A stretch of DNA of 64,000 nt from Adineta vaga (lineage: Eukaryota; Animalia; Rotifera), in contig CP075492.1 in assembly GCA_021613535.1 (NCBI GenBank), positions 8,990,001 through 9,054,000 on the forward strand. Reading direction: 5' to 3'. A model generated the notes under the pieces. The model worked only from the letters and a program-made list of their open reading frames with translations. It did not search any database and had not been told where the DNA came from. Position numbers and translations under genes: made by a program. Positions within the stretch are counted from its first letter, which is position 1, and each line of letters opens with the position of its first letter. This document shows positions 30,368 through 48,723 of the stretch, one piece after another.

Positions 30368-34551
<4,184 letters not shown>

Positions 34552-39174: not shown

Positions 39175-43545
<4,371 letters not shown>

Positions 43546-45414: not shown

Positions 45415-46630
45415 ATGTCTTATCCATTTTTGGAAACACTTTTTCATACATATCAATCGCAAATCGGAAATAAAGATGATGCATTAATTATCTTTACACA
45501 TTGGTGTTTGATTTCACATGGTTTTCAACGATTAAACGGCAATCAAGTAAATCTCGGGAAATTTTCATTCTCTATTGTTATTAATTTCATGTTGATTTAG
45601 AAAACAGAATTATTACCAAATGATTGGACACAAAGATCGGATAATTCCATTACAATGGAATATACGAAGAATGATATTGGCTACAATTTAAAATTATTCG
45701 ATGTTGAAGGCGTATTTTTTGCACATTTATTTGTAAGAAAAAACTGCGTTGAAAATTATTTCTAATCTCTTGGTTTTTCTAGCGTAATAAACAAGGTCGA
45801 CATGTAGAAATTAATTTTAGCGTCAATGATCATGTTCATGAAAATTATAAAGAATTTCAATCGTATGATTTCTTTGAAGAGAAGAAAAGAGACTGATTGA
45901 TTTTTAAGATTTCTTTGTTTAGTGCTTATAAAAATTTGAATGATTTGAAAAAAGAATTTCATGAAAAAATTGAATCATTAACAAATGGCAGTTCAGATTC
46001 AAATGTTACCAGCGATAGTACTACGTCCAGTAGTGTTCGTACAGGTACTTCAAGTAATCAACAACAGCAACAACAACAACAAACCGGTGGTCGACGTCAA
46101 ATACCCGATGATCCTTTGATCGATCCTTTGGCTGCTGGCCGACGACCACATCCATATCCGGGTGGTTGGTCAGTGTAACAAATTTGAAGAATCAATCAAA
46201 GAGTTAATACTTTGATTATTTTAGGGGACAAATTCCTGGTGGTTATGGTCCTGGTGCAGGTGCCTATGGTACTTCAGATCTTGATCCATTTGGACGTAAT
46301 ACGCGAGGAGGAGGTATGAATATGGATCCATCGATGTTTCAACCAGGAATGAGGTAAGAATATTAAATTTTAAAAACAGAATTCGATTTGATCTGTAAAA
46401 TGTGATCTTTAAGTGTATTCTGAATAAATAATTCTATTTTAGACCACCCATGGCTCGATTCCAACCTCCTGGTCCTCAACGAGGTCCATATGGTCTTGAG
46501 TAAGTCTTTCTCTTCCAAATCATATTTTCTTCAAGCTTATTTTTTTTTTGAATTCTTTAGTCCATTCCAAGAACCAAATCCTGATCATTTACCAATGCCA
46601 GGTTCACATTTAGATGACATGTATAATTAA
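45415..46630 (+). CDS. PSMF1: Proteasome inhibitor PI31, 7 exons
   Basis: FP-domain start DALIIFTHWCLISHGF...ELLPNDW; Pro/Gly-rich tail with DPL, GTSDLDPFG, GGM, PPMARFQP, EPNPDHL; ends in HbYX motif MYN. Confidence 0.9.
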
Positions 46631-46762
46631 AATTTGTATTCTTGTTTATTTTAACATGTCTGTTTTGGTTTTCTTTTCTTTTTTCATAATAAAACACAAA
46701 ATCTAGCAAAGAGAGTAAGATATATAAAATCATTTCAAAAATGATTTTAGATAATATATACA

Positions 46763-47170
46763 ATGTCAAAAGATTTAGATCCTACGGGTGGTATGTTTAG
46801 TGGTAAGTTTTGATACAATAAAATCTATTCATTATTTCATTTCCTTTTTCTTCGAAATAAAAAGGACCCAAAGATACAATGATGGAAAAGATAAAAGGAC
46901 CGGGCAAACCGGATTCTCAAACGTAAGTATCATCATTAACAGAATGAAATCAATTTTTTTATATTTGTTTCTTTTTAATAGATCTGCTCCACCAGGTGCT
47001 AAAACGGATATTATTAATCCAAAACAACCACCTGAGTAAGTAACATTTTAATCAGCCACTTTTCCTTATACAATGATATCTTTAGACCAAATCGTGATCA
47101 TGCACCAAAGATTGATTTCCAAAGAGAACCATTGCCAGGTCAAGGACCGCAAACTGGTGGTTTACTTTGA
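46763..47170 (+). CDS. 78-aa 'mini-PI31', a stand-alone PI31 C-terminal-like microprotein (exons 46763-46802, 46865-46922, 46982-47035, 47086-47170)
   Basis: Three GTAAGT...AG introns splice into an open 237-nt frame: MSKDLDPTGGMFSGPKDTMMEKIKGPGKPDSQTSAPPGAKTDIINPKQPPEPNRDHAPKIDFQREPLPGQGPQTGGLL. Confidence 0.8.
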
Positions 47171-47265
47171 TGATTCTTTTTGTTTAATTCATCTATCTGA
47201 TATTCAAGCTTGTAGTCTTTCATGTCCGTGCTTTTCTGTTCTTTTTGCTTTTAGATAGATACTTT

Positions 47266-48723
47266 ATGGCATCGAATACGAAACTTCGAGTAACAGTTAC
47301 GTTGCAACCATCAGGAAAATCAAGTGTTCTAATGGTTCAAACCCTAGATGATCTTCTTCGACAATGTTCATCAAAATTTCGTATTAAAGCTCGTCGAATT
47401 TTCTTTTCAACTACGGCAGAAGAATTACTTACAGATTTAACGGGAGTTTCCAATGATACGAAATTAATTGTTACTTGTGGTGATACATATACTCTAGGAA
47501 ATCTATCATCCACAACAAAAGTAAAAACTTCAATCGATCCATCATCCGTTTCTATACAAATTATTGCCAATAGAACACTGATTGAAGATACAGCTGTTGA
47601 TCAACTGAAAAATGTCGCACGAATCTATGCACGTGTCAAACATATCTGGGGTATGCCTGATTTGCATCTTGGTCAATCAACACCGATTGGTTGTGTTGTT
47701 GCTACTGAACCATCTATTGTCTATCCTGAATTAATTGGTTCTGATATTGGTTGTGGTATGAGTTTTGTTCGCACATCTTTACGTCTCGTATATGAAGATG
47801 ATGAAAGAAAATTAACAAAATGGACTAAACAATTGCAAGGTCTTGATGATTATTTATCAAAAGAAAAGATTAAACAATTTCTTCAATCGGAACTTGAATG
47901 GCCAACAACAGTTACGCAAGTAAATACAGATTATTCGGAAAATGAACAATTAGGTACCATTGGAGCTGGTAATCATTTTGTTGAATTACAACGAATCGAA
48001 GAATTATATGATGAAAAGTATGGACAATTATCAAAAGATTCTCTTTATCTTCTTGTACATTCGGGAAGTCGTAGTTTGGGTGAGAAATTTTTGCGTGAAT
48101 TTGGTAAAGGCACAGATGAAACACGTGGATTAGAAAAGGGTACGGACGCTTATGAAATCTATATGAATAAACACGATGAAGCATGCGCATGGGCAAAACG
48201 AAATCGTGCTCTCATCGCACAACGTTTTCTTGCATGTCTTGGGGATTCGACTTCTGGACAATGTCTTGTTGATATTTGGCATAATAATGTTGTTTTAAAA
48301 GAATTATCTTCGGATAAATCTCAAGTACATCTTCATCGTAAAGGTGCTGCACCATCTGATAAGGGTCTTGTTGTTATTCCTGGTAGTCGTGGTACACATT
48401 CCTATCTTGTGGAACCTATTGAAATTAATCAAGAATCATCCGGTTATTCTTTGGCACATGGCGCTGGTCGTGCAATGTCTCGTTCAAAAGCTCGTCAATA
48501 TTTCAGTGAAAAATATCCTGATATCAATCGGTTGAAAATAACTGAAAGTTTAGATTCACATGTCGTTTGTGATGATAAACAATTACTATTTGAAGAACAT
48601 CCACAAGCCTATAAAACGATCGATGCTGTCATTGATGATCTTGTTGAAGCAAAATTGATTCGAGTGCTTGCAAAAATGAGACCTTTAATTACATATAAAA
48701 CACGTTTAACACATCACGAATAA
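47266..48723 (+). CDS. RtcB-family RNA ligase of the release-factor-H-coupled (RtcB2) type, with N-terminal DCX/ubiquitin-like domain; intronless
   Basis: GMPDLH, YPELIGSDIGCGM, LGTIGAGNHFVELQ, LVHSGSR, WHN, HRKGAAP, VVIPGSRG, SLAHGAGR; metal ligands and guanylylated His present. Confidence 0.92.
   Translation: MASNTKLRVTVTLQPSGKSSVLMVQTLDDLLRQCSSKFRIKARRIFFSTTAEELLTDLTGVSNDTKLIVTCGDTYTLGNLSSTTKVKTSIDPSSVSIQIIANRTLIEDTAVDQLKNVARIYARVKHIWGMPDLHLGQSTPIGCVVATEPSIVYPELIGSDIGCGMSFVRTSLRLVYEDDERKLTKWTKQLQGLDDYLSKEKIKQFLQSELEWPTTVTQVNTDYSENEQLGTIGAGNHFVELQRIEELYDEKYGQLSKDSLYLLVHSGSRSLGEKFLREFGKGTDETRGLEKGTDAYEIYMNKHDEACAWAKRNRALIAQRFLACLGDSTSGQCLVDIWHNNVVLKELSSDKSQVHLHRKGAAPSDKGLVVIPGSRGTHSYLVEPIEINQESSGYSLAHGAGRAMSRSKARQYFSEKYPDINRLKITESLDSHVVCDDKQLLFEEHPQAYKTIDAVIDDLVEAKLIRVLAKMRPLITYKTRLTHHE

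Follow-up and report, generated by a model that had tools for sequence, protein, structure and literature searches.

The tail of the proteasome inhibitor PI31 (PSMF1, Fub1) carries the motifs DLDP, PPGA[R/K]xD and PNxD in that order, with an Asp at each of three blocking positions. In the human protein D197 faces the β5 threonine and D244, with R242 in S3, faces the β2 threonine (PMC10319324), and D259 faces the β1 threonine (bioRxiv 10.64898/2026.05.28.728263). Two human constructs, the monomeric residues 152-271 without the FP domain and residues 1-261 without the HbYX end, each inhibit all three sites, the substitution D244A weakens β2 inhibition, and the Pro following the β2 Asp is thought to resist cleavage (PMC10319324). 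Prolines organise binding at human β1 (bioRxiv 10.64898/2026.05.28.728263) and the central residues of PI31 co-evolve with each species' proteasome (PMC10743371). In the microsporidian Vairimorpha necatrix, PI31L, which is described as the species' own PI31 orthologue, is a reduced PI31 of 147 residues; its N-terminal half has no resolved density, its chamber-resident part comprises 72 residues, its blockers are D84, T118-D119 and P129..D132, and its role in dormancy is established (PMC9666519). The proline-rich tail of FBXO7 is a second animal tail of the PI31 type; it enters the 20S chamber, where it has an Asp at β5. Its central motif is reported to differ from that of the PI31 tail (PMC4453063). 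FBXO7 itself is a large F-box protein whose tail has been seen at β5 only. PITHD1 is a folded protein unrelated to PI31. It offers a functional precedent as an animal proteasome inhibitor of dormant cells, one that acts on the 26S proteasome, unlike the protein proposed here (bioRxiv 2024.12.04.626795).

Here we analyze a locus of the bdelloid rotifer Adineta vaga within a window (the whole stretch of DNA analyzed, 64,000 nucleotides, on contig C3, one of the six that make up the 100.8-Mb genome) in which a small gene, mini-PI31, lies in the gene order myosin light chain, PI31, mini-PI31, RtcB-like, RBBP4-like. Its 78-residue product shares with the PI31 tail the three ordered motifs, Asp at the three blocking positions, a Pro plus Gly content of about 31% (24/78 residues) and a last intron at the human position. 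Human PI31 from G194 to its end also has 78 residues with the β5 Asp as the fourth, which is a parallel and not a proof. With PI31L it shares the reduced form, Thr-Asp at β2, a distance of 13 residues from the β2 to the β1 Asp, and a size near that of the chamber-resident part (PMC9666519); PI31L is its closest counterpart in size and spacing. Unlike PI31L, however, it is an animal protein and a paralogue that coexists with an intact PI31. Unlike PI31, it is a separate gene beside the full-length one, has Thr for the aromatic residue, usually has no Pro after the β2 Asp, and has a compressed or re-registered β5 hairpin. The first-pass annotation had noted that mini-PI31 lacks both the FP domain and the HbYX end, and this was confirmed; it is consequently not a full member of the PI31 family. 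By analogy, it probably works like the PI31 tail. There is also no UBL or F-box (neither these nor an FP domain would fit 78 residues) and no Pfam match. Our literature search, which covered few subscription journals, found no tail-only PI31 paralogue or microprotein.

Mini-PI31 is a separately transcribed gene

The first-pass annotation had proposed four small exons, beginning 132 nt past the PI31 stop, that splice into 78 residues, and this was borne out by a GT..AG splice model of the window letters that contains no stops (introns of 62, 59, and 50 nt in phases 1, 2, and 2; Table 1). The letters also confirm the motifs DLDP, GGM, PPGAKTD, and PNRDH in order, as well as PPMARFQ (46444-46464), the β1-type motif EPNPDH and the MYN end in the neighboring PI31. 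All three predicted junctions are present in contigs of sequencing runs X5 and X20, from two different studies, in records of 282 and 270 nt, respectively, that are separate from the PI31 records. As the contigs skip GT..AG introns they represent spliced molecules, though the RNA nature of the runs is a guess (they are presumed RNA, hence "RNA-like"). The six PI31 junctions are likewise all present in RNA-like contigs, and no joint between PI31 and mini-PI31 was seen in four runs.

Table 1. Features of the PI31/mini-PI31 locus (window positions) and examples of spliced-leader RNA genes (contig positions).
Feature	Position	Strand	Description and basis
Full-length PI31	45415..46630	+	7 exons, 281 aa; FP domain; ends MYN
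AATAAA, likely PI31 poly(A) signal	46688..46693	+	Window letters; PI31 contig ends
Trans-splice acceptor AG	46749..46750	+	Spliced leader joined between 46750 and 46751, 12 nt 5′ of ATG
Mini-PI31 exon 1	46763..46802	+	Residues 1-13; DLDP with D4 (proposed β5-site Asp), GGMF; splice model, RNA-like contigs
Mini-PI31 intron 1	46803..46864	+	Phase 1, codon 14; joint in X5 and X20; place common to all orthologues
Mini-PI31 exon 2	46865..46922	+	Residues 14-33; least conserved linker
Mini-PI31 intron 2	46923..46981	+	Phase 2, codon 33; splice model, RNA-like contigs, orthologues
Mini-PI31 exon 3	46982..47035	+	PPGA[K/R]TD at 46989-47009; K40 proposed β2-site P3 residue, D42 proposed β2-site Asp
Mini-PI31 intron 3	47036..47085	+	Phase 2, codon 51; PNRD directly 3′
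Mini-PI31 exon 4	47086..47170	+	PNRD at 47087-47098 with D55 (proposed β1-site Asp); ends GLL, no HbYX
Spliced-leader RNA gene examples (L044-L049)	C1:1639629, C1:2551162-2551334, C2:8684675-8691977, C5:9884358-9925967		

The X20 contig carries nine extra letters, CTTACCAAG, ahead of position 46749. When the AG that follows is included, they match the 3′ terminus of a multicopy genomic exon, which ends in CCAAGAG before GT (46 genomic copies of the exon end versus 6 for a control), and since trans-splicing of a 23-nt leader onto many transcripts is known in bdelloids (PMC1925144), we conclude that CTTACCAAG is the spliced leader. The position of the acceptor just upstream of the ATG makes this ATG the first start of mini-PI31's own mRNA, and a TTTTAG-type acceptor is likewise found 5′ of the ATG in the orthologues. 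PI31 contigs end at 46696-46729, 5′ of the leader acceptor. Mini-PI31 is thus a real, separately transcribed gene that has an ATG and a leader acceptor to itself, and its own leader and mRNA exclude an alternative 3′ end of PI31. As to the source of the leader, the genome contains 46 copies of the leader 13-mer, many in divergent pairs about 160 bp apart, and in these spliced-leader RNA genes the exon end CCAAGAG is followed by GTAAAT.

The arrangement of PI31, mini-PI31 and the RtcB-like gene is operon-like (window 45415-47259); the coding regions are 132 and 95 nt apart, and the leader acceptor follows the 3′ end of PI31 by about 20-50 nt. One X4 contig spans mini-PI31 exon 4 through RtcB, and an X20 contig of RtcB begins at 47259 directly after an AG, as expected of a trans-spliced mRNA. 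The RtcB-like gene (47266-48723), which is probably FUN_012184, is intronless in the window, has an intron near codon 129 in L025, L029, and L037, and is missing from the C6 homoeologous region. Elsewhere in the window, 33001-34387 and 41800-43410 match the same exons of a C6 cation-ATPase gene, a local partial duplication.

That mini-PI31 is unannotated seems correct for this genome, in which FUN_012182 (EF-hand), FUN_012183 (PI31), and FUN_012184 (RtcB) are consecutive and leave no id for it, if the published A. vaga ids correspond, as we infer, to the window genes. It does not hold for Adineta steineri and Rotaria sp. Silwood-1, for which the NCBI assemblies list the orthologue as an unnamed 78-residue product with no domain.

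Conservation among bdelloids and descent from the PI31 tail

Intact orthologues were modeled in A. steineri (L017, L018, L021), in Rotaria sp. Silwood-1 (L040; species according to PMC7943196) and in about eight metagenomic bdelloid sequences (L022, L028-L032, L036, L037, L042). All are 78 residues long except that of L022 (85), their introns always lie in codons 14, 33, and 51, and they end in GLL, GLH, GLK, or GFP with no HbYX. Among the ten 78-residue copies protein identity is 76-99%, dS is at most 1.0 and dN/dS is 0.04-0.33, with the motifs kept, and mini-PI31 is under purifying selection. Invariant columns (43/78 overall) are most frequent in the motif exons, with 12/14 in exon 1 (11 orthologues) and 12/18 in exon 3 versus 7/19 in exon 2 (G14, D17, M19, K22, G25, P26, and P29). 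In A. steineri, Rotaria and L031-L035 there is no PI31 between the myosin gene, which in the window is 91% identical to its A. steineri homologue, and mini-PI31, so in these the gene is no alternative 3′ end of PI31. In some A. steineri contigs (L018, L020, and L021) the RBBP4-like gene downstream of mini-PI31 is apparently broken off after exon 1, with calls of 132 and 390 residues in its place; it is whole in L017, L019, and L055.

One intact mini-PI31 and one PI31 were found in the A. vaga genome. Its C6 homoeologous region has no PI31 and no RtcB and holds a decayed mini-PI31. Its exon 3, at 81% nucleotide identity, is interrupted by a one-base insertion, one donor reads GC, and exon 4 is truncated. 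This copy (L011:2320-2510, equal to C6:6853320-6853510) and a second decayed copy (L039:318-646) both lie upstream of RBBP4, and in L025 RtcB follows PI31 directly with no mini-PI31 between. The decayed C6 copy and these losses indicate that mini-PI31 is older than the divergence of the homoeologous regions and that single copies have been lost several times. An open frame of 105 codons, which may be fortuitous, encloses the C6 remnant. Neither the mini-PI31 tree nor that of the myosin light chain was resolved, and we therefore draw no order of events from them. A search of 1.84 billion representatives with an exon-4 profile, which at 27 positions is blind to distant kin, returned nothing but sequences of bdelloid type and a single chance match of repeat-like character. 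No match to exons of PI31 or mini-PI31 was found in the acanthocephalan P0021, and none in viral contigs. Look-ups starting from P0009, P0012, and P0017 led to a different myosin light chain locus. Two homologue searches with single-exon frames gave no candidates, yet an orthologue is present in the collections searched, so these negatives carry no weight.

In the neighboring PI31, exon 1 matches solved PI31 FP domains (E 0.006), and exon 7 has its match at the C-terminus of PI31. The full-length bdelloid copies keep the FP domain, the HbYX end and a standard β5 hairpin, and all seven seen have PPMARFQ, in which Gln replaces the β2 Asp. At a separate locus on the minus strand of C1 (L007, C1:1192920-1196039) lies a pair of short exons, alike in sequence and separated by about 360 nt, that are reminiscent of the beginning of an FP domain; they match PI31 exon 1 weakly (E 0.2) and possibly belong to an FBXO7-like or other FP-domain gene.

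We consider it likely, on the evidence of motifs and introns, that mini-PI31 descends from the PI31 tail. Alignment alone is a weak guide: the local alignment to the neighbor's tail has shuffle p-values of 0.002-0.03, and the hhalign probability is below 7%. Searches of Pfam, PDB and the Atlas with the orthologous protein P0082 (the full-length query; window exons were queried singly), with its part 30-62 and with an exon-3 profile gave nothing significant, the kinesin matches to P0082-derived and exon-3 queries being chance ones (E > 1). The PI31 C-terminal profile PF08577 (PI31_Prot_C) found nothing in this genome and was as blank with the controls, and the tail exons of the neighboring PI31 likewise have no Pfam match. 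The ordered pattern DLDP, PPxA[RK], PNxD is present in all intact orthologues (as PPGARTDP in L031-L035) and in the neighbor's tail and arose in 0/200000 shuffles, a figure that flatters because the pattern was picked after seeing the sequences.

Intron positions are more telling. The human PSMF1 donor at c.764 is phase 2 in codon 255 (PMC13376622), and by a short alignment to the solved structure human PNPDH starts at residue 256, which places mini-PI31 intron 3 exactly at the human position; the neighbor's last intron lies four codons earlier, so that mini-PI31 and not its neighbor keeps the human position. The PI31 genes of L022, L025, L037, and L042 have tail introns in phases 1, 2, and 2, as mini-PI31 has, at offsets of 2, 2, and 4 codons. 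The phase-1 intron of these genes lies in the Gly that precedes Met in GGM, at a distance from DLDP two codons greater than that of mini-PI31 intron 1, and is absent in this genome (window 46226-46353) and in L029, an intron loss or gain within bdelloids. The first-pass annotation had rested an old partial duplication on the last two introns being phase 2 at positions equivalent to those of the neighbor. The phases are as claimed and the positions are not, lying 2 codons (T/SAPPGAKTD versus R/PPMARFQ, the slash marking the intron) and 4 codons (E/PNRDH versus D/PFQEPNPDH) apart; the duplication itself is probable, with the human intron position and the phase-1 intron a stronger argument than the neighbor's introns. 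Motif order, the human intron, phases 1, 2, and 2, and the adjacency of the two genes in this genome add up to a likely descent from the PI31 tail.

The β5 region is less straightforward. DLDP, matched to PI31 by the first-pass annotation together with GGM, is invariant; the register of GGM is uncertain and perhaps wrong, as it lies 7 residues from DLDP versus 11-15 in solved structures, a gap that is probably too short for the β5 hairpin, and M11 is Ala in L031. Residues 13-15, rather than GGM at 9-11, may be the counterpart of the PI31 GGM because of the intron position and because D4+11 is the human spacing; the residue at D4+11 is P, M, Q, or S across orthologues, with Met in one A. steineri allele. 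A single-sequence AlphaFold2 model of P0082, which is weak evidence, has no fold beyond one 4-residue helix (pTM 0.14).

A proposed division of labor between mini-PI31 and PI31

The explanation we favor, with somewhat better than even confidence, is that mini-PI31 is a partial duplicate of the PI31 tail that acts as a monomeric blocker of the 20S proteasome and splits the job with full-length PI31. An old duplication of the last PI31 exons, before the split of Adineta and Rotaria and the divergence of the homoeologous regions, would have given rise to an independent gene equipped with an ATG and a leader acceptor, an origin for which the case is strong. Its product would be a disordered chain of 78 residues that corresponds to the portion of PI31 residing in the chamber. 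Going by the solved PI31 structures, this chain most likely enters the 20S core by threading, as a monomer, and there D42 at β2 (K/R40 in S3), D55 at β1, and possibly D4 at β5 would face the catalytic threonines. That both human constructs inhibit implies that the FP domain and HbYX end, missing in mini-PI31, are dispensable for inhibition, and a monomeric chamber binder is plausible by analogy. Mini-PI31 would then supply β2 and β1 blockade of free or open-gated 20S, and full-length PI31 dimerization, gate docking and β5 blockade. That the two probably divide the ancestral job in this way is the weakest step, and is suggested by the Gln at the β2 site of bdelloid PI31, which keeps the FP domain, HbYX and the β5 hairpin. 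The Gln of bdelloid PI31, against the Asp kept by mini-PI31, is a new observation; the first-pass annotation had given the neighbor's PPMARFQ and had not drawn from it that the full-length protein is without the β2-blocking Asp. RFQ may still work, however, as the central residues of PI31 co-evolve with the proteasome.

The proposed blocking residues are conserved in all 11 mini-PI31 copies (D4, K/R40-T41-D42, P52..D55), as is PPGA, with Thr in the aromatic position. The Asp spacing is 38 and 13 in mini-PI31, 35 and 13 in V. necatrix, and 47 and 15 in human PI31. Among ten mostly acidic columns only 4, 6, 17, 42, and 55 are invariant, each of them assignable to a PI31 motif, although with 43/78 columns invariant the invariance of any one Asp is not rare. 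Other features leave some room for a protein that is derived from PI31 and binds within the 20S without stable inhibition at several sites. Such a protein might compete with full-length PI31 and displace it while being cleaved slowly, or it might serve core particles that are immature or faulty. Pro follows D42 only in L031-L035, and Ile or Val does in most copies; PNRD is invariant, with H56 in 9/11 copies (N or D otherwise) and the prolines after it mostly replaced; and the β5 hairpin is altered. The FP-less human tail can be degraded, some proteasomes hydrolyzing it, such as the immunoproteasome, and PI31 itself is reported to contribute positively to the assembly of the immunoproteasome (PMC11761684). 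As invariant Asp at three blocking positions and the V. necatrix-like spacing fit a blocker, we give this alternative a minor though appreciable chance.

It is also rather unlikely that mini-PI31 serves some other function as a Pro/Gly-rich microprotein of bdelloids, whether it has no relation to PI31 or was repurposed after descent from it. The blank profile searches (Pfam, PDB, Atlas), the weak global similarity in sequences of biased composition and the conserved parts KIxFQ and GPQxxG, which have no PI31 counterpart, are consistent with such a protein; against it, coincidence would have to account for motif order, Asp spacing, the human intron, phases and adjacency together, and selection is concentrated on motif exons 1 and 3. 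The suggestion that PI31 uses the exons as an alternative 3′ end, or that they are a remnant, non-coding or in decay, has adjacency alone and the decayed copies on C6 and L039 in its favor and can be dismissed as having a negligible chance, given the leader and ATG, the separate contigs, the missing joint, the intact copies without PI31 upstream in three lineages and a dN/dS far below 1; for the alternative 3′ end, which the first-pass annotation had itself raised, the leader-bearing transcript and the selection on PI31-less copies amount to a refutation.

A special case of the 20S-blocker explanation, and the one favored by the first-pass annotation, is a dormancy-specific hibernation factor that would load onto proteasomes during drying and leave them at rehydration. 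Its precedents are PI31L in microsporidian spores (PMC9666519) and PITHD1 in dormant fish eggs (bioRxiv 2024.12.04.626795), and both flanking genes are stress-induced in the tables available from one study, PI31 in radiation table S5 and RtcB in radiation-plus-rehydration table S3 (PMC10809525). PI31 is listed in those tables, however, under the radiation and not the rehydration response, and the published desiccation tables, in the parts covered, give no id for mini-PI31 (PMC10809525). The depth of its X20 contig is higher than those of its neighbors, contig depths being unable to rank genes. We regard this special case as improbable. Similarly improbable is a two-part PI31 in which the full-length protein has lost β2 inhibition and the tail microprotein switches off the 20S in anhydrobiosis or after radiation damage; if true, mini-PI31 would have no earlier counterpart, in the literature covered, as a natural PI31-tail microprotein that stands alone in an animal.

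With no gene model, mini-PI31 is a candidate that has been invisible to published rotifer stress studies. It would also offer a compact natural template for proteasome inhibitors directed at β2 and β1, PI31 peptides already having been used as a basis for such inhibitors (PMC10743371). Whether the inhibition by PI31 in vitro matters in cells has long been in question because the same protein carries the FP and HbYX functions. A tail-only gene under selection, beside a full-length copy minus one blocking residue, separates the functions of PI31 and makes this question testable.
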